A stretch of DNA of 64,000 nucleotides from Anolis carolinensis (taxonomy: Eukaryota), in contig NC_085842.1 in assembly GCF_035594765.1 (NCBI RefSeq), forward strand, positions 30,418,782-30,482,781, given 5' to 3'. Position numbers and translations under genes: made by a program. Below the pieces are notes generated by a model. The model worked only from the letters and a program-made list of their open reading frames with translations, was not told where the DNA came from and did not search any database. Shown one piece after another: positions 51,601 to 64,000 of the stretch. Within the stretch, counting starts at the first letter, position 1, and each line of letters opens with the position of its first letter.

Positions 51601-51689
51601 AGATCCTCTCGTTGAGTTCCCTTCCTTCCTTCCCTGGGAAACTCGAAAGTTATCACAATGAAAATAGAAAATAATAATAAAAATAAATA

Positions 51690-51997
51690 CAGTAGAGTCT
51701 CACTTATCCAACACTCGCTTATCCAACGTTCTGGTTTATCCAACGCATTTTTGTAGTCAATGTTTTCAATACATCGTGATATTTTGGTGCTAAATTCGTA
51801 AATACAGTAATTACAACATAGCATTGCTGCATATTGAACTCCTTTTTCTGTCAAATTTGTTGTATAACATGATGTTTTGGTGCTTAATTTGTAAAATCAT
51901 AACCTATTTTGATCTTTAATAGACTTCTCCTTAATCTCTCCTTATTATCCAACATATTCACTTATCCAACGTTCTGCCGGCCCGTGAGACTCTACTG
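51690..51997. mobile_element. Tc1/mariner MITE with right TIR hit by a hAT insertion
   Basis: Left TIR cagtagagtctcacttatcc; right end gtgagactctactg, with its last 8 bp duplicated at 52694-52701 then TA. Confidence 0.8.
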
Positions 51998-52693
51998 CAG
52001 GGGTCCCCAAACTAAGGCCTGGGGACTGGATGCGGCCCTCCAAGGTCATTTACCTGGCCCCCGCCCTCAGTTTTATAATATAATCTTTTTATATCATTTT
52101 TAATAATATAATATATTGTATTTACATATAATACTGATATTAATATTATAATGTTGTACAATATAATACAAATAATAATACCATATAATAATATTATGTT
52201 ATTACATATAATATTACAGTATAGTAGTATAGTTCAATATAGTAATATATACTGCTAATATTGTGAAATGCTAATAATATAATATATTCTATGTACATAC
52301 AGCTGCTCTGAGTCCCCTTCGGGGCGAGAAGAGTGGGATATAAATGTAATAAATAAATGTAGTAGATGAGTAAATAAATAATTTTAGACTTAGGCTCGCC
52401 CAAAGTCTGAAATGACTTGAAGGCACACAACAACAATCCTAACTTGACTATCTCATTGGCCAGAAGCAGGCCCACACTTCCCATTGAAATCCTGATAGGT
52501 TTATGTTGGTTACAGTTGTTTTCATTTTTAAATATAGCATTCTTTCATTGTTGTTGTTGTTTTGCACTACAAATAAGACATGTGCAGTGTGCATAGGAAT
52601 TTGTTCAGTTTTTTTTCCAAATGATAATTTGGCCCCTCCACAGTCTGAAAGATTGTGGACCGGCCCTCTGCTTTAAAAGTTTGGGGACCCCTG
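51998..52693. mobile_element. Non-autonomous hAT element carrying an L2-like tail fragment
   Basis: 16-bp perfect TIR caggggtccccaaact / agtttggggacccctg; 8-bp TSD ctctactg. Confidence 0.88.
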
Positions 52694-53026
52694 CTCTACT
52701 GTAATAAATTAATAGTAATATTACAAAAATTACGACAGAAACTTAAATAAAATAAAAATAAATAAGAAAATAATAACAATATGACCAAAATTACAATTGA
52801 AACTTAAAAAGTGACCACAATAATAAAATAAAAATAAAATATTAATTAAATTCTGGATAAATAAAATAATACATAAAAATATAAACAGCAATATATCATT
52901 AAATAAAACGATCAATAAATAAAAAATCACAATAGAAATTTGTACAAAGTGCAGGCAAGTACTCAATTGCTTCCTAAATGGGATCAGTGCATGACTGCTC
53001 AAAGATCTGACATAAAAATTGTTATA

Positions 53027-53352
53027 CAGTAGTCTCATGTATCCAACATAAATGGGCCAGCAGAACGTTGGATAAACGAAAATGTTGGATAATAAGGAGG
53101 AATTAAGGAAAAGCCTATTAAATGTCAAATTACATTATGATTTTACAAATTAAGCACCCAAACATCATGTTTTACAACAAATTGACAGAAAAAGCAGTTT
53201 AATATACGGTAACGTATATTACTGTATTTACGAATTTAGCACCAAAACATCACAAAACATTGACTACAAAAACATTGACTACTAAAAGGCAGACTGCATT
53301 GGATAATCCAGAACGTTGGATAAGCGAATGTTGGATAAGTGAGACTCTACTG
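53027..53352. mobile_element. Tc1/mariner MITE (opposite orientation to 51690)
   Basis: TIRs and TA flanks as in the other copies. Confidence 0.8.
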
Positions 53353-53399
53353 TAATACAAATAGCAATATAATTGATCAAATAATTTATTTTATTGTGT

Positions 53400-53640
53400 C
53401 AAAAGCAACTTGAGAACATACTCCAAGTCACTTCTGATGTGAGAGAATTGGCCATCTACAGGGACGTTGCCCAGGGGACGCCAGGATGCGTTACTGGGAG
53501 GCTTCTCTCATGTCACCACAAGCTGGAGCTGACAGACGGGATCTCACCCTGTCTCGCAGATTCAAAACGGCAACCTTCAGGTCAGCAACCCAACCTTCAC
53601 GTCAGCAGTTCACAAAGGTTTGACCCATTACACCACCACG
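53400..53640 (-). mobile_element. Sauria-related SINE
   Basis: Reverse complement of the family at 3015-3280. Confidence 0.7.
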
Positions 53641-54087
53641 GATATAATAAATTTATGTTATAAATATAAATAAAAATTACAATAGAAACTTGTACAAAGT
53701 ACAAACAAGTACCCAGCTGCTTCCTAAATGGGATCAGTGTATGACTGCTTAAGGATTTGACATTGTTATTTCACGTGGAATGCATAGCCAATTTATTATT
53801 GTAACATTCTTCAACATAAATGTGTACTTCTCTCGATTTCAGATAATAATGTTTATTTATATCCCTCCTTCTCTCCCCATACAGAGACTCAAAGCGGCTC
53901 ACAATGAAAAGCATGGCAATACAACTTAAAATATATAATATACAAATATTAAAACAGTATTAAACACCATTAATATTAAAAACAATTCAAGTTGAAACCA
54001 TAATCGCCATAACCATAAGGTATTATAGGGTATGTGTGCATTTTAGGAGAAACCCTGTATTTGTATAAATCACAAGAAATGCTATTG

Positions 54088-54828
54088 TATGGGTTGCTGT
54101 GAGTTTTCTGGGCTGTATGGCCAAGTTCCAAATAGGAGAGGCATGGGCAAACTTCGGCCTTCTAGGTGCTTTGGATTACAACTGCCACAATTCCTAACAG
54201 CCTATCGGCTATGAATGTTGCAGTTGGCCACCTTGATTGGCATTGAATGACCTTGCAGCTTCAAAATCTGGCTGCTTCCTGCCTGGGGGAATCCACCGTT
54301 GGGAGGTGTTAGCTGGCCCTGATTGTTTCCTGTCAGGAATCCCCTTTGTTTTTTAGTTTTGTTCTTTATTTACTGTCCTGATTTTAGAGTTTTTAAATAC
54401 TGGTAGCCAGTTTTTGTTCATTTTCATGGTTTCCTCCTTTCTGTTGAAATTGTCCACATGCTTGTGGATTTCAATGGCTTCTCTGTTTAGTCTGACATGA
54501 TGGTTGTTAGAGTGGTCCAGCATTTCTGTGTTCTCAAATAATATACCATGTCTAGGTTGGTTCATCAAGTGCTCTGCTATGGCTGACTTCTCTGGTTGAG
54601 TTAGTCTGCAGTGCCTTTTATGTTCCTTGATTCGTGTCTGAGCAATGCTGTGTTTGGTGGTCCCTATGTAGACTTGTCCACAGCTGCATGGTATACGGTA
54701 GACTTCTGCAGAGGTGAGAGGATCGCTCTTGTCTTTTGCTGAACGTAGCATTTGCTGGATTTTTTTTAGTGGGTCTGTAGTTTGTAGGTTGTGTTTTTTC
54801 ATCAGCTTACCTATGCGGTCAGTGGCAG
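54088..54828 (-). mobile_element. Penelope (Poseidon-type) 3' fragment: GIY-YIG endonuclease and pLTR end, interrupted by half a hAT MITE
   Basis: ORF 54353-54802: VYRIPCSCGQVYIGTT, RIKEHKR, SAIAEH, REAIEI, NFNR. Confidence 0.9.
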
Positions 54829-55224
54829 ATCCGACATTGTTATTTCAGGTGGAATTCATAGCCAATTTAATTATTATTGTAACATTCTTCAACAGAAATG
54901 TATTTATTTCAATTTTGGATAATAATAATTATGTTTATTTATACCCCACTTTTTCTCTCAATACGGAGACTCAAAGGAGCTCACAATTAAAAGCATTGCA
55001 ATCGAACTTAAAATATATAGTATGCAAATATTAAACAGTATTAAACATCATTATTAAAAACAATTCAAGTTAAAACCATAATCACCATAACCATAAGGTG
55101 TTATAGGGTGTGTGTGTATTTTAGGAGAAACCCTGTATTTATATAAACCACAAGAACTGCCATTCATGCCGAAAAACAAAAGCTTAATTTATTTAAATAC
55201 ATAGCATCCTTTTAGCCTGGAAAG

Positions 55225-55760
55225 GTCACGCATGCGCACGACGCTCCTCGGAGCAAACTGCGCCACCAGCTTCTCGAGCCAAGAGCTGCCTTTACTGCGC
55301 ATGGGCACAAGTATGCATGTTGTGATGACTTTCTCAATTCTCCCCACCTCCCTTTCCAGATTCCGCGCATGCTCAGTTCGGGGCGTCTTTGTTGCCCTCT
55401 CATGCTAGGGCGGTGGCTGCGCGCGTGCACGCACGCCGCCAACGTCCTTCTTCGTGTCCGCCAAGGGTGAGCGCATGTGCGCATGCGCACGAGAGTCTAC
55501 TAACTGCGTCACAACCTTTTCCAGCGTTAAAATTAATTTTGGTGGGCACCGTTGGATAAAATTTCAAAAGACGATTCTGCCGGTGTGCTTCGATATAAAT
55601 TTTGATGCGGATTTCGACCACTGGGATGATGACGTGAAAGGTGGGCGGGGCCTCGAGGCTTTGTTCTGGAGCCGCAGCGCGCGACGAAGGGCGGGGGGAC
55701 TCGGAGGAGGGAGGGGCCGGGTATAAAAGGCGGTGCGCGCGCACCCACCGGCCATTCTGG
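55225..55760 (+). promoter_or_regulatory. CpG-island promoter with NRF1 cluster, CRE-like site, GC box and TATA box (probable PPP1R10 promoter)
   Basis: Five GCGCATGCGC-like sites 55229-55489, gatgacgtga ~55628, gggcgggg 55643, TATAAAA 55722, initiator-like gccatt ~30 nt downstream. Confidence 0.8.
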
Positions 55761-55773
55761 GGTCTGTGTAAAG
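55750..55773 (+). other. PPP1R10: Short non-coding exon 1 of divergent gene (probable PPP1R10/PNUTS)
   Basis: Strong donor aag|gtgagt 50 nt after the TATA box. Identity is inferred from the head-to-head PPP1R10/MRPS18B arrangement in mammals; no coding exon is in the window. Confidence 0.55.
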
Positions 55774-56169
55774 GTGAGTACTGTGTCTCTGCGAGCGTTA
55801 TTTTTGGGAGCGGTTTGGGAGGGGACCAAAGGTTATTGGTATTGGGTTACTACTATTTTTGTTACCCTCTTCCTGGAATATGTCACCATTGACATTTCTA
55901 ACTCCTAAGTAATAAATATTTCGACGAATTGCTCTTTTGAGAGCATTATTTCTCTTAGAAATAATAGAAACCAATAAGAAGTGAGCTGTTAATTTAAAAT
56001 TTAAGTTCAGAATTCCCCCCAAAATTGAAATCCTGTGATTTGTGTCTGGTCAGTCGGCCAGGGTTTCTTGTTACATACGATTATATAGCTCTTTTATTTC
56101 CTTAGATTTTGGCTTTGTTTCATTAACCAAAAAATCTTAACCGTGCTTTATCTTTCTTTACCTTCCTAG

Positions 56170-56846
56170 GTTTCCTAGGTCTCGAGAAACTGTTCAACGT
56201 GCGCCGCGAAACAAAGAAACCCCCCCACAGTTGAGCCTCTGAGACGACACACAAAGCCAGCTCTGTTTCCGATCGTCTGTATTGGGACCCACCCAGCGGA
56301 GAACAACTACCATTCAAAAACATAAAAAAAATCAAATTTATATTTAGGAACAACTTTCCCTGATTTTTTTTATCATGCAACTTTTTGTGACTCATTGACC
56401 ATCAAAAGGTTGCCTTTTTTTAAACAAACCGAAAATGAGCTATACCAAATTTACTTTTTTTCTTTAAAAAACACAGCTTAATCCAAAACTAAACCTTGAG
56501 GTGCTGCCGAAGAGAAAATTAATTGGATAGTAAGTGTCGCATTTTCAACCAACTGACCAAAAAACAGTCGTCCGTGTCGAAGTGAGCTAACGGCACGAAG
56601 AAAAGACCAAAAAATGAAGGGGAAAAGTGGGTTTTATTTGAGGCGTTAACCCTTTGCATACTCCAAAATGCATATTTATATAAGGAGTATGATGGTCTCT
56701 TAGAAAATCCATCGACTCCAGGATTGTCAAGGGTTAATGAGCTCCCACATAACAGATGGTGGTGACTGAGCCATAAAGTGCTGCTTCTTTGTGTGGGAGA
56801 CGTGGAAATAGAGCTAAATAAGCAATCTGTACATAAAGATTGCAGG
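56170..56846 (+). other. PPP1R10: Probable long non-coding exon 2 (5' UTR) of PPP1R10, structured, with short uORFs
   Basis: Branch-like cttaac, pyrimidine tract, tandem acceptors cctag|gtttcctag|g (56170/56179). Best donor is cagg|gtaaga at 56846, alternative ata|gtaagt at 56529; the 3' boundary is uncertain. Confidence 0.45.
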
Positions 56847-59800
56847 GTAAGAGCGGAAGGAACAAAGCTATAACTGGGTAGTGGCCAGTGATAAATCAAT
56901 TTAATTGGATGAATTTGTCATAGTCTTCAATATTTTTAAATTTGTTAAAAATTGGGTTGTGTTTCTTTAAAAAAAATTGACGCTTATATAATGTATGTGT
57001 AGGTATGTAATACTGGAAAAAGTAACTGGCAATCTACAAATAAAGATTGCAAAATGGCTTGGGGGATTCATTTAAAAACTAATCCAGTATGTATTTTTTT
57101 AAAAACTTGTTAATAGGGAGCAGGAATCTCTATAGGGCTCAAAATGAGGTCTAGCGTGCTTATAATGTTGTAGCTACCTATATTCCCCCACCCCAGTGCA
57201 ATATGGCGGTATTTTCTCTTTTGTCCCTGACAAATGGCATTGTACCTTTCCTTTACAGGATGTTTCCCTTTTTATTTTATCCTACCTCCCCCATGTGTGG
57301 AGGGAGAAGAAAAGGGTGGGGGGGGGTGATGGTATTAACCCTGCAATGATCAGTAATGAGGTTTGACTCCGGCACTTGCTGGATCATAACTTGCCACCCA
57401 AACTGTTAAATAGGTTCTAGTTTATAGAACTGACATAAAATGATTCAGGTGGTGTATGTGATGGAGGTTGTATTGCTGTAGTTTCTTCTTAATAGATTCT
57501 GAAGCCTTTGCTTTATTTTTTCCCCCTAATTGTCTGTGCTCTTAAAATGGCGTCTCTGCCTCTTTCCTTCTCCAAGAGCCCACAAGGCTTTCTGGGCAGG
57601 GAGCTGATGTAAGCAGCTTGCAACAAACTCCTCCCCCTGAATAGCTTGTGCTTGGCACCCAAGCGGGCAGTCATGGAAAGGAGGGGGGGGGGGAAGTGGC
57701 TTACCCTTCCGCCTTGCAACCTTTTCCACAAGGATCTAACCAAATTCCACTCCCGTTTCCTCTATAGGAAATTTAGGTTACAGCTTGAGCAGTGCAAAGT
57801 ATGATCATAAATCCGCCGAGTTTCTCTTTTTTTAGGTTTCAGCATCACACAAGACCTTCGGATTTCAGTGCTTGCTCCATGTTTGCTGTGCTTTGTTGAG
57901 ACAAATCTGTTAAGTGTTACTATCAGAAAGGCAACTGTTTTGTATCCTCTTCTCTCCCCTTCCCCCATCCCCTTGCCCTGTTTTCATCTTCTGGGTCTCT
58001 TTGAAGGAATGGAGCAGGGGAGCATGTTTCTTAATTGAATCAGATCTAATTGTTGACATGAAATGCTACCACTGGACCCCAGATATTTAGCCAGTGTCAG
58101 TGACACTTGCTAAAACTAACAAGGTTCTGTATGGGGGATCTTGGCATTTTCTCTGTCCACATGTACACCAAAGGGGGTGGGTGGGAAGGGGGGAGTCTTG
58201 TATTAATTTGCCACATTCCACCGTTCCTGTACAATGTACTAGGAAAGAAGTGATCATTAGGAAAAAGGGAATCCAGCACTTGTATTACTTCATCAAAGGG
58301 AGGGGAACAGCCACAATTCCACCTGGTAAGCAAAACCTTTCTGGTATTAATTACATCTCACAACCTTCATTTCTGTTCCAGACCACTTTGTTCATTTTTA
58401 ATTTTTTTTTTTGCTGCTGTTCTCTTCCATTGTCAATACCCTAAAGTGACACCTACTGATGCATGCAGGCTGTTAAGGGTATTAGTATTTTTGCCAATCT
58501 GTTGAGGACATTAGTGTTTTCCAAGCTGGTTAATTCCTTAAAACAGGATTCTGATTCCTTGAATGGTTCTGCATGAACATCAACTAGCATTTCAGTAATG
58601 CTGCCCTTGAGACTTCTGCATTAAGAGTGAATGCTGTGAAGGGAATGTTCCACAAAGTGAAACTGAAATATCTTTGTCTCCGGTGGTAGCATTTCATATT
58701 GTAAGTCCCAAACCCACAACCTGATGACACTGTTCTGGCTTTTTAACCAATTGAATGCACCTGCCATTTCACACAACATTGCAGGGTGCTTTAGTCAGGA
58801 CAATGCTGTGTCTTTATTGGGTTGAATAGAATGAGAATGTAAAATTGTAAATGTCCATTTAATCCTACACTTGGATGACCATGCACCTGTTGTAGTCAGA
58901 TTTGCCTTTCAATAGGAAAACACTGATAAAGTGGGTTTTTAAAAAAAAAATACAACAGTCACATGATATCTGGGAATATTTATGCAGCAAAAATGGAAGC
59001 TGCCAAAATGGCATTTAAAATAAATATAGGTTGGGATAGAGGTTCACATTTCCATAAATGCACACTAATAATTTCTGTTACATCCATTAGAAAATGCTTA
59101 GAAACCCAACAGCTAAGGTCTTGTGTTTTAGGGGATTCAGTTTTGAGATAGCAAGCAACTGCCTAGCTGATAAGTTACCCAGCACTAAAGCAGGCAAATC
59201 CAGTAGATCCTAAGATTCCCTTTAAAACCATTGTTCAAAACATTCCTTTTTAGGAAAAAAAAACAGTGTTAGGAATGCTGGTTTACATAAGATTCCAAAA
59301 CAATTCTGGAAGCCTTACAAGAACTACTGCCCAGTTAAATAGTTCTATAGATATACTTCCACTGTCTCCAACACTGGTCTTTTTCCTCATGATTTGACTC
59401 CTGCCAGATGTTATAGTTACATTGTTATGTCAGCCAGTAATTTGATGAGGCAATGAAATGTCACAAGACTAGGGTAGCTGGTTGAGATTGTCTTGTGTAT
59501 ATGTGCAATGTAAAAACATGCAGCTGGAACCAGTCCTCTTAAGATTTCCCAATAAGACAAATTCTCATCCTTCAATAGCTGCTGAAGAAAGTGGGTGGAT
59601 TCTCCTTTACCCTAAATTTGAATCATGATAGTTCAACCTGCAATCTCATCCCTTGCATACTGAACACTTAAGGGGAGAGCTATCCCTGTATCCAAAAATA
59701 ACTGCTCTTCATTCTATATTGACAAAGAATAGTCTGCATTCCTGAACATACTTAACAGGAAACACTGAGGCCTAATTTTCATGTAAGTGTAACAAAAATT

Positions 59801-62800
59801 TGATGCATAACACACCGGAAGAGTGGGCTATTTTTTTTTTCATTTAAGAATTTGAGTTCACAGTTGGGCAATAATTTTTCGAGATATGGTACAGTACGAG
59901 TTTTGAGCCAAGTGTGAATTCTGGGCTTCCCTTCATAGACCACAGTGGTTTTCTAAAAAGATCTTTTTGAATTGTTTTTGGATAGTCTGACCAACCTATA
60001 GCATATTTTTTTGGCAAGGCAACATGCTCTATAAAAATGTATTGGTATAGGGCTGTAACAGCCTTGATTTTGATAGGTACATAGAAATTTGGGGGAGGGA
60101 TGTTAAATGTAGTAAATCTTCAAATGCATATGTTGGAATATTGAAACCTAATATGCCTAATTTCTCAGGTTCTCAGTTTTTTTTAACTTGTTGCCAAACC
60201 AGGAACTACCATGAGAACACCCAGTTGGATTCCAGTGCTTAGAAACACTGATAAGAGAAACCAGACAGAATATTTCAGAGGTTTTGCTACTAATACTTAT
60301 TTTAAAAGTGCTTTTTGGGACTCCCTTTTTTTGAAATGCTGGCTTCGAGTGGAATTGCGTATGTGCCACGGTTCAGTTTCCCCATGCTTGCAAGACTAAA
60401 AGTTCTTCAGCACACTGCATTAACGAACTATCTTTCATAGGAAGCGTAACAACTGTTCCTTAGTAATTCCCCTGGGAAGATGTTTTAAAAACATTTGCTA
60501 ACATATATTAATAGAATTGTAGGATATGAAGATGTGTGTCTTCATTGGATTAAAATCCTGATTCCATTCCCTAAACTGTAAGTACTAAACAACTCTTCCC
60601 ATGGAGTCCAATCCTGAAGAACTCAGGTGAATTGGAGCAATGGGAAGATAAAATAAGATGAGTAGATGAGTATAACTTTATGCTATAGTAGTACTGTTTA
60701 TCCCCCTCTACTGCTGCATAGTGAGTTCCTTATCCTGGCCTTGACACTGATACAGCTTCCACATTACCTCTGTAAGCCCAAACTGATATTTCTAAAAAGC
60801 TGTGTTGGATTCTTTGCATGATAAGCAAAGCAATATTATGAGTTTAAGCTGCTATAGCTAATTGACTTGCATCTTACACCACCAGTTTGACAAAAGATGA
60901 ACAATACAGTCCTGTTGGGAGTGTCCCTTGGGAACTGAGGTTTCCTGAATTGCAGGTGTCCCTCCCCAAGTACATTTTGCTTTCAAGTCATATGTAAGAT
61001 TGGTGGATTATAGTTATACAATGTATTTTGGGGTGAAAGCTTGAATGTTAATTTAGAAGTACCAGGACTAAATATCTTATTCTCACTTTTCCGATATACA
61101 GTAAAAGCTGCAGTGTTTGTATTGCAAATTTGATTATGTTAAACTTCAGAGTTACACGGTTGTCTAACAAATAATGTTAACGTTTATTCCTTGTATTTTA
61201 CTGTGTTTTGTTTTTATATTTTATGAAAATAGCATTTATGGTTTAATTTTGTTAAGCTTGTATATGATCCAAACAACTGTTAGGCATCTAAATACTTGCA
61301 TTTATTTTGCTGCATATAGCTCCTAATCCTGCAGCTTGAAGGATCTTTGTGAATTGCTTTGATTGGAGAAATTCTAAGATTTCAGTGTGTTTGATCCAAC
61401 ACCTGGCTCCTGGTTCTCCTGGCCAAGTAATTTTGGAAGGCTAGACCCCCGCCCCCCCCTTTTTTTTTACATAATTGGCAGGTTTAGAGTACCGATATAG
61501 CTAGAATTTAGAGTGACATATGCATTAAAGGCCTCAAAAGTAAAGGCAGTGTGACTGAATAGCTATATTATGTGCGCCCTTTGATTGCATTTGTGGAGTT
61601 ATATAAGGCAGCAGGTGCAGGGTCTGTAGACCTGATACGTTTCAAAAGATTAGCATGAGTTTGTTTCCCAGTTGTCTTTTTTAACAATAGTACATATGAA
61701 AAGCATATGCCCTTCTACTCTAAAATTGCCTTGCTGCAATAAAAGACACTTGGGGGGGGGGAGTAGCGTTTTATGTAAAAGAATTTGATTGGATATCTGA
61801 CAAATATTACTTAGGCATGTTCTGTGGCTCAGTTCTTCATATATGTCTGTTTTTGGTACAACATTTTGATCAGTTTTGAAAATGTCAGGTTTCAGCTGAT
61901 CAAAGGTGTCATTTCTATTAAGAGATCCCAAAAAACTAATGTCTACACACCTTGATACTTAAGAATTTTAGGAAATAAAAGCATTGTCCTGTATTGGTTG
62001 TAATTGAAAGGCCAATATTTTAAATGATGAGGATTTCCCCCAGTTAATTATTTGATAAATGGCATCTAGCTTTAAGGTGTGTTGTTTATTGTTGCTTGTC
62101 TTGCATGTTGGTTTATTTGGCCCAGTTACTGAATAAAAGTCTTGTGCCCTGTTCTAATTTGTAAAGGAATTCTTGGGCACTTACAGTGAAATCATATCAG
62201 ATAAAGAACCAAAGTGCAGTTATTTTGTCTGATTGGACTTTTAAGATTGGATTCTTAACTTTTAACTTGGGGAATTTATATCTGTGATTAATTAAATATG
62301 CTTTTAGGGTGAATTTTTGTGATGTATGTCAAATTGCACTTCTCAGCTTTGCCAGATAGATGGAATTGCAGTTCAAGATGTATTTGCTAGAATTACGAAG
62401 ATTATTATAGAAATTGGAAAATATAGTTTAGGTCTTGAGTGTAGTTTGCATATCGAATTACATTACTCCTGTTTTATTTGTTGTTTGACCAAGTGTGAAA
62501 AGATTAGCAAAGCATACTTGTTACATTTCATATGAAAGAAGCATGGGCACAATAAATTAGCATTGTAAGAAGTTTGACTCTATAGAGCTATTGAACAGTT
62601 AAAGCTGTCAAACTTTTGACGCTATTTTTATGGAAGAACAATGCTTCTGATGTGAAGTAGGTGCAACATTGCTTATTTTTATGGAATATCCAATATTATA
62701 AAACACTGAAAATTAATTAAATACGTATTCATGCTGTTTGGCATGGCTTTGTGTACTCTATTCCTATACATTTTCACTTGGGACCAGGTCTTGCTGAATT

Positions 62801-64000
62801 CAGTGAAATTGAGCACAGTAACTTTATAATGTTACTGTGTACAATTGCAGCTTTAATGAAAAAATCTTAACTGTGTAATGAATCTTGTAAGAACAACTGA
62901 GCATTTGTTAATGTTTTGACGTAATCATAGTCAATACTTTCAGCAAATCAAGTTATGGTTGGAAATAAAAGTAGTTACAGCCTGAAATGAAAAGTGGTGC
63001 CTGCCACTAACATTGAAATGCTGTTAGTCTCAATTTGTAATTTACTCTAGTTGATTTAAGGGCCTTTAGCTGGAATTAACATTTGGATTTAGCATCATAT
63101 ATTTACTGTTTTCCAACATACCATGCTGGATTGCAGATTAATGCATTAAAAGAGCTTTTTAAAAAATTAGTTATCTTCATGGCTTGAAATTAAACAGACA
63201 GTGCCATTTTCAGTTATTTTTATAATCAAGCTATTGTGGAGCATATTAGTTTGAACTTTATAAGCAATTTAAAAAGTTACTGCCAACATGCTGGCTTTTA
63301 AATCTCGTGTCAGTTTAAAAACGAATATGTGTAACTGTATTCCATATGTCATCAAATGACTACTTTTTGTCTTTGAAAATCACACTTATAAACATGCTTA
63401 CTTGGCAGGCCTGTTGAAATCAAAGTAAACATGTATAGAAGTTAGTTATAAAAACAAACTTGTTTATTAAAGTGGGTTAATTGAGCCACATCTGTTTGGG
63501 GGCCATGCCAAAGTAATTTAGATGTATTATGGTATACAGTGGTTATTCTCCACTTCACATAGTATTGTGTTAGAAACTCAATGTTCTAGTTAGACTTTTT
63601 CTATTTGTTTTGGGGAATTAAATCTTTTTAGTTTGGTAGTAATAATGTCTCCTGTTCATCTGATCATCAGGGTTTTAAGAGTTTATTCTATAGGGAAAAT
63701 GATTGCACAGTATTTGAAATACAAACACTGCAGCTTTTGTGCATCTCAGAAAAGTAAAATGAGAAGAGATGAAAACTACATACAGTGGGTGCATTGTTAG
63801 AAGATGAGAAATGCATCATGAAATAATATTTAAGAATGTATTGTCTTGAAACAATTTAATTGGGCAGAAAAAAATTCTGAAGTTTTTTTCATAAATTGTA
63901 AGCTGTTGTAGCAAAAAACTTTATCAAGCGTGTGGCATCTTCAGCGCTAGTGGGTACAATGGCATAAACTTATGAGTCTGGAGGCTGCTGCCATGTGCAG

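Follow-up and report, generated by a model that had tools for sequence, protein, structure and literature searches.

A repeat-free stretch next to MRPS18B in Anolis carolinensis is a predicted untranslated leader of PPP1R10 with deeply conserved elements in its proximal part

Why is the last 8.8 kb of a 64-kb stretch of Anolis carolinensis DNA (the whole of which is called the window here) free of recognizable transposable elements (TEs), when the 55 kb before it is crowded with them? The first-pass annotation, made from the letters of the window, placed the region from 55.2 to 64 kb in a non-coding leader or intron of putative PPP1R10, the gene for PNUTS, and proposed strong selection on its sequence, spacing or RNA structure across the intron. 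Comparison of the window with itself and with orthologous loci of six other tetrapods indicates that the repeat-free stretch is real, that it corresponds to the predicted untranslated 5' leader of PPP1R10, and that its promoter-proximal part is conserved to a depth matched elsewhere in the window by exons and the ATAT1 first-exon region.

Self-comparison of the 64-kb window by blastn identified 59 repeated segments between positions 1 and 55,164, separated by gaps with a mean of 751 bp, a median of 334 bp and a maximum of 4.9 kb. Between 55,165 and 64,000, no repeat family was shared with the rest of the window, the sole exception to the absence of repeats being a weak internal inverted pair. 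When the same segments were placed at random in a broken-stick permutation, a free run of at least 8.8 kb arose in 0.09% of trials (P about 0.0009). A scan of the window found no tandem repeats past 53.3 kb, and 20 of the longest stop-free segments between 55.2 and 64 kb had no credible match in Pfam (four matches, with E values of 0.036-0.098, were at chance level and all under the curated cut-offs). The first-pass statement that the region has no credible open reading frame (ORF) holds. The absence of shared repeats, tandem repeats and credible Pfam matches, together with the permutation, makes the desert real by these measures and confirms the observation from which this work started. The inverted pair consists of 55-bp segments at 61,075-61,129 and 63,712-63,764 (84% identical, E 1.5e-7) that lie 2.6 kb apart within the desert. 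They could mark the termini of an old DNA transposon or pair with each other over that distance; no Pfam match was found in the interval between them.

The genes that precede the stretch lie on the minus strand. ATAT1 was recognized from three exons at 33.1, 29.07 and 25.1 kb, whose matches to Pfam PF05301 follow the order of the profile. The exons of MRPS18B had no match in Pfam and its identity came from phmmer matches to PDB mS40 at 46.4 kb (E 5e-14) and 45.4 kb (E 1e-5). The MRPS18B and PPP1R10 models were searched exon by exon. The seven exons of MRPS18B were all located, running from 51,548 to 41,916, and at the protein level they are 91% identical to those of Anolis sagrei and 84.5% identical to those of Sceloporus. 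Orthologous loci were reached through the MRPS18B proteins of Sphaerodactylus (gecko), Sceloporus, Podarcis (lacertid), Chelonoidis (turtle), Petaurus (marsupial) and Xenopus laevis. In Petaurus, the divergent neighbour of MRPS18B encodes an 846-aa product with PF08711, an exon of which matches PDB PPP1R10 (E 2.5e-25), and the ATG exon of this gene begins MGSGPIDPKELLKGL; in Xenopus, PPP1R10 again lies head-to-head with MRPS18B and its product begins MGSRPIDPLELLKGL. The human genes are a head-to-head pair with a bidirectional promoter (PMC2774331). MRPS18B thus stands head-to-head with a PPP1R10 neighbour in Petaurus, Xenopus and human; in the window, ATAT1 lies downstream of MRPS18B.

Between the MRPS18B ATG and the ATG exon of PPP1R10 lie 8.2 kb in Petaurus and 5.4 kb in Xenopus, distances which indicate that a long untranslated PPP1R10 leader is ancestral. 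In both species the shared, ordered set of motifs sits between the promoter and the ATG exon, and since the lizard stretch has these conserved elements in common with the Petaurus and Xenopus leaders, 55.2-64 kb is predicted to be the untranslated 5' leader of lizard PPP1R10, running on the plus strand away from MRPS18B. Motif and tblastn searches of the window, and of the DNA up to 10 kb from MRPS18B in four sauropsids, did not turn up the first coding exon of PPP1R10, and from these searches the lizard ATG exon must lie past 64 kb. Synteny (ATAT1, MRPS18B and a divergent promoter) and elements collinear with the marsupial and frog leaders therefore uphold the assignment to a non-coding PPP1R10 leader. 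The idea of a single plain intron does not fare as well, since several conserved exon-like units with splice signals suggest that the leader is probably more complex.

The conservation of the leader extends well beyond the lizards. In the gecko, a basal squamate, 56,125-58,707 aligns with 73% identity over 2.76 kb, rising to 93% at 58.2-58.4 kb, and the alignment of the same species to MRPS18B is limited to one exon and one 56-bp piece. Podarcis aligns over 56,196-58,704 (76%) and again at 59.2-59.5 and 60.3-60.7 kb. The turtle retains six collinear leader blocks that are 68-96% identical, conserved equally to or above its MRPS18B coding exons; four leader blocks align in Petaurus, and the hairpin block aligns in Xenopus at 29 of 30 nucleotides. 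Constraint thus covers about 55.65-58.7 kb and islands at 59.2-59.5 and 60.3-60.7 kb, as judged from gecko, lacertid and turtle and in part from marsupial and frog. As an internal control, the remaining parts of the window that align to turtle and marsupial are exons of ATAT1 or MRPS18B, together with a block at about 37.7 kb that belongs to the ATAT1 CpG-island/first-exon region; there is no other non-coding match outside the leader. The introns of MRPS18B and ATAT1 gave no alignment to the species in which the leader is conserved. In the more closely related Sceloporus, collinear coverage reaches 97% of 56.1-62.75 kb, as against coverage of 34% for the MRPS18B gene body and 13% for its first intron.

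Order and spacing are conserved along with sequence. The ordered motif set is the same in all amniotes compared, and across five sauropsids the distance from the 5' splice site at 56,526 to the donor at 58,328 ranges from 1,794 to 1,941 nt and that to the donor at 60,578 from 4,048 to 4,403 nt, so that anchor spacing differs by under about 10%. In all six other species, the proximal leader is almost without locus-internal repeats. The distal leader behaves differently. Between 60.7 and 64 kb, alignments to gecko, Podarcis, turtle, marsupial and Xenopus revealed no conservation past the iguanians, and Sceloporus aligns with 74% identity in a block ending at 61.3 kb and with 66% identity at 61.5-62.75 kb, where its flank ends. 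In the distal leader of Xenopus laevis (5,549-6,010 of that locus) lies a 462-bp element resembling a miniature inverted-repeat transposable element (MITE), with 46-nt terminal inverted repeats that are 85% complementary; it shows locus-internal similarity, with 303 self-similar bases in kb 5-6. Its presence indicates that the distal part is able to take insertions. Selection on sequence and spacing, as proposed for the whole intron, therefore holds for about 55.65-58.7 kb and the two islands and fails for 60.7-64 kb.

Features of the repeat-free stretch, in window coordinates. A slash marks a splice junction.
Feature	Position	Strand	Remarks
Repeat-free run	55165..64000	.	Left edge is the end of the TE copy at 55,005-55,164 (self-blastn, permutation)
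CpG-island promoter	55200..55749	.	Several GCGCATGCGC (NRF1-type) motifs; CpG observed/expected about 1.1
Putative non-coding PPP1R10 exon 1	55750..55774	+	Initiator-like GGCCATTCTGGGG block, then donor AAAG/GTGAGTAC
Putative non-coding exon A	56171..56526	+	Ends at 5' splice site GGATA/GTAAGTGT
Most conserved block	56527..56853	+	84-98% identical to gecko, lacertid and turtle
Hairpin 1	56822..56843	+	GCAATCT-GTACATAA-AGATTGC, within 31 nt invariant in seven tetrapods
Hairpin 2	57029..57050	+	Stem GCAATCT/AGATTGC as in hairpin 1 (here the slash parts the two arms); loop ends AATAA
Conserved patches	57190..57660	+	ATGGCGG...TTTTGTC and GGTGATGTAA.CAGCT...AAACTCC.CCC; common to turtle and marsupial
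Exon-like unit C	58224..58328	+	Mini upstream ORF (ATG TAC TAG); donor CCTG/GTAAGC; 93% to gecko; conserved in turtle and marsupial
Nearly invariant 62-nt stretch	58329..58390	+	GTAAGC through pyrimidine tract to CCAG acceptor
Squamate-conserved island	59211..59488	+	Aligned to Podarcis and gecko
Sauropsid cassette-exon-like unit	60482..60613	+	84% to turtle; branch-site-like TGCTAAC
Distal leader/intron	60700..64000	+	AT-rich, repeat-free in the window; aligns to Sceloporus only

At its 5' end the stretch carries a TATA/CpG-island promoter (55.2-55.8 kb) that is predicted to direct plus-strand transcription. The TATAAAA at 55,722 is conserved in five sauropsids, as are the GCGCATGCGC and GGCCATTCTGGGG motifs and the donor AAAG/GTGAGTAC, and these motifs suggest the position of the PPP1R10 transcription start site. 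Just upstream, at 51,650-55,164, about 3.5 kb of clustered TEs lies between this core promoter (55.7 kb) and the MRPS18B ATG exon (51,548-51,459, minus strand). The cluster includes repeated copies (53.9-54.1 and 55.0-55.16 kb) as well as an ORF (54.36-54.84 kb) that was taken, on visual inspection, for a Penelope GIY-YIG remnant and has no Pfam match. In gecko, Podarcis and turtle the corresponding exon and core promoter lie about 0.5-0.65 kb apart, and in Sceloporus about 1.9 kb; comparison of the cluster with the shorter of these distances indicates that an ancestral bidirectional promoter has been split in the window lizard. In front of the MRPS18B ATG, no more than about 100 bp with a single GCGCATGCG motif survives. 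The position of the cluster also indicates that TEs are able to land directly beside the desert.

Among the exon-like features, the 5' splice site GGATA/GTAAGTGT at 56,526 has the same sequence in lizards, turtle, marsupial and Xenopus, seven species in all. The matching acceptor of exon A may be either TTCCTAG/ at 56,170 or ACACAG/ at 56,476. Immediately downstream, the most conserved block carries GTTAACCCTT and AAGGGTTAAT arms 80 nt apart, followed by ATGAGCTCCCAC, GTGTGGGAGAC and hairpin 1. The block also contains a short ORF (56,740-56,772; ATG AGC TCC CAC...) whose M-S-S-H start recurs in lizards, turtle, marsupial and frog; its differences are synonymous (TCC/TCA, CAC/CAT), a hint of a conserved upstream peptide that comes from few changes. 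The acceptor of exon-like unit C (58,215-58,224) reads CACAG/TT in Podarcis, gecko and turtle, keeps its AG in Sceloporus and reads CACCG/TT in the window; if unit C is an exon, its acceptor may be missing or displaced in the window species. The cassette-exon-like unit farther downstream has an AG acceptor near 60,522 and a donor, AAACT/GTAAGTA, at 60,578.

Both hairpins have the general form GCAATCT-N8-AGATTGC with invariant stems, and both fold significantly better than shuffled sequence (z of -3.1 for hairpin 1 and -3.8 for hairpin 2). Because the loop of hairpin 2 ends in AATAA, the hexamer AATAAA is present in all seven species, and a CATAAA hexamer sits in hairpin 1. On the 3' side of hairpin 1 is a donor-like AGG/GTAAGA, which gecko and frog do not share. 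No conserved GU-rich element was seen downstream of either hexamer in the species compared. A search of the stretch against Rfam gave nothing at the gathering score and one chance-level match to mir-1234 (E 0.53).

We consider it moderately probable that the stretch comprises a promoter and a long untranslated PPP1R10 leader whose elements are under purifying selection acting on the pre-mRNA, and that this selection keeps TEs out. The interval 55.2-60.7 kb would be free of TEs because its first 5 kb is packed with selected elements, from which insertions are removed. These elements would be the TATA/CpG-island promoter, at least two short non-coding exons with conserved splice sites, and intronic blocks including the twin hairpins. 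Since the best-kept motifs are strand-specific RNA signals (5' splice sites, a branch site, a pyrimidine tract with AG, and AAUAAA), we infer that they act on the pre-mRNA. There they could decide whether the transcript is spliced productively to the distant ATG exon or takes an unproductive course, such as retention, an early 3' end or the use of alternative untranslated exons, and this choice would set the dosage of PNUTS. The PNUTS-PP1 complex sets elongation and termination by RNA polymerase II, and its dosage matters. The distal 3.3 kb (60.7-64 kb) lacks such constraint and is probably TE-free by position or chance.

Several points weigh against this explanation. The identity of lizard PPP1R10 is drawn from the orthology of its flanks, with no coding exon of the gene in the window or in the sauropsid flanks, and the exon boundaries and the transcription of the blocks are deduced from motifs only. 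Some species, among them that of the window, lack the donor past hairpin 1 or the acceptor of unit C. RNAalifold predicted 27 pairs in 56,636-56,750 across six amniotes, none of which has compensatory changes; since the hairpin stems never vary, this result says little, leaving RNA structure neither shown nor excluded, and invariant palindromes fit DNA-binding sites as well as they fit RNA hairpins. Finally, TEs were detected by within-window similarity and cross-species collinearity rather than with a repeat library. Within-window similarity misses single-copy elements, and old single-copy TE fossils may remain, above all in 60.7-64 kb.

The ambiguity of the palindromes leads to the strongest of the alternatives, that the blocks are DNA-level elements (promoter-proximal enhancers or palindromes bound by dimeric factors) serving PPP1R10, MRPS18B or both, with TEs kept out by selection for a compact module. 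We regard this as possible, though a good deal less probable than selection on the pre-mRNA. The blocks lie only 0.4-5 kb from the shared CpG-island promoter, the invariance of the hairpin arms and their lack of covariation are what would be expected of a sequence-specific palindromic site, and published transposon-free regions have been interpreted as extended regulatory DNA (PMC2241635). Nevertheless, a number of the motifs that are kept best have the orientation of RNA signals on the sense strand of PPP1R10 (the GTAAGT donors, TGCTAAC with its AG, and the pyrimidine tract with CCAG), and 31 invariant nucleotides would be an unusual depth for single factor sites.

Doubtful is the proposal, akin to that of the first-pass annotation, that PNUTS-PP1 monitors its own activity by way of the leader intron, which would serve as a detained intron or attenuation platform. 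In one version, twin-hairpin AAUAAA/CAUAAA hexamers and U1-type sites would set the level of premature termination. The AATAAA in hairpin 2 of seven species, the CATAAA in hairpin 1 and the perfectly conserved GTAAGT 300 nt upstream are the kind of arrangement it calls for, and precedents exist in the autoregulation of PCF11 by premature cleavage and polyadenylation (PMC6458999) and in the intronic ultraconserved element of ARGLU1 (PMC5389617). Against these stand the lack, in the species compared, of a conserved GU-rich element past either hexamer and the absence of constraint in the distal two fifths of the stretch. In addition, literature searches for a tie between PPP1R10 and intron retention, ultraconserved elements, intronic polyadenylation or autoregulation yielded nothing of relevance, and hence no connection of the gene to such a loop. 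In its most explicit and slightly less likely form, which we offer as speculation, the twin hairpins GCAAUCU-N8-AGAUUGC with A(A/C)UAAA and the tetrapod-invariant GUAAGU 300 nt upstream would form a switch between productive splicing and early termination or retention, read by PNUTS-PP1 or the termination machinery, and the resulting dosage feedback would be at least 350 million years old.

Least likely of all is that the run reflects mostly chance and the ordinary depletion of TEs near CpG-island promoters, without special meaning: although further 3-5 kb stretches elsewhere in the window are likewise without within-window repeats, the distal 60.7-64 kb is unconserved, and the method misses single-copy TEs (a long interspersed nuclear element, or LINE, at 35.3-36.5 kb sits in just such a "gap"), this reading is disfavoured for 55.2-60.7 kb by the permutation, by an interval that is insertion-free and stable in length in five sauropsid lineages and holds deeply conserved blocks, and by the 3.5 kb of TEs that did insert just upstream of the promoter.

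Several repeats elsewhere in the window deserve mention in their own right. A 604-codon open frame at 2-1,813 (minus strand), which continues past the left end of the window, encodes a Penelope-like reverse transcriptase (PF00078) and ends in the start of a GIY-YIG-like motif; it possibly belongs to a young, intact element. The LINE (35,349-36,539, plus strand) is a reverse-transcriptase fragment, after which comes an ORF that carries a C2H2 zinc finger; it is antisense to ATAT1 and sits within that gene's first intron. Two tandem repeats were also seen: a 75-bp unit with GCGCATGCGC cores at 11,882-12,042, within a CpG-rich patch at 11.7-12.0 kb, and a four-copy, 99-bp AT-rich array at 36,872-37,266, about 0.4-0.8 kb downstream, on the intron-1 side, of the ATAT1 CpG-island/exon-1 block (37.7-37.8 kb).

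Transposon-free regions maintained across vertebrates are known from sets cut at 5 or 10 kb (Simons et al. 2007, PMC2241635). Like them, the PPP1R10 stretch is a multi-kilobase interval, here one in which no TEs were recognized, orthologous across distant vertebrates and located beside a transcription-regulator gene. At a threshold of at least 5 kb it contains no within-window family, TE domain or lineage-specific insertion, as judged without a repeat library, and its orthologues have few locus-internal repeats and stable spacing in the proximal leader, the distal part in Xenopus holding the MITE-like element. At 8.8 kb or more it stands at the small end of the class, and it differs from published regions in that much of its proximal part aligns between distant species, whereas most bases of the latter do not (PMC2241635). 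Neither PPP1R10 nor MRPS18B was found in the text-form supplementary files of that study. The human PPP1R10/MRPS18B locus shares the head-to-head pair and the CpG-island promoter (PMC2774331); the lizard differs in that 3.5 kb of TEs now parts the MRPS18B ATG exon (51.5 kb) from the PPP1R10 promoter (55.7 kb).

With respect to regulation at the RNA level, the leader can be set beside two systems. Autoregulation of PCF11 reportedly uses a conserved polyadenylation signal in intron 1. As with PCF11 (PMC6458999), a termination-linked factor here has an early intron with conserved poly(A)-type hexamers; those of PPP1R10 differ in that they lie inside hairpins, are only candidate poly(A) signals and have no conserved downstream element that could be seen. 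The ARGLU1 gene contains an intronic ultraconserved element that controls homeostatic splicing (PMC5389617), and the PPP1R10 leader resembles this element and poison-exon cassettes in its deep non-coding conservation, its exon-like units and splice signals, and its association with a gene for nuclear RNA or transcription regulation. It differs from both in that its elements lie upstream of the start codon and its alternative isoforms are putative. Because of this position, the premature-stop logic of nonsense-mediated decay would not apply in the usual way.

As far as our searches of the literature show, neither the control of PPP1R10 itself nor conserved elements or feedback in its leader have been described before. 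The locus now offers concrete targets: a 31-nt hairpin block invariant in tetrapods, a second copy of the hairpin, a conserved 5' splice site and several exon-like units. A modest TE desert spotted by eye in one genome can thus lead to deeply conserved non-coding sequence.

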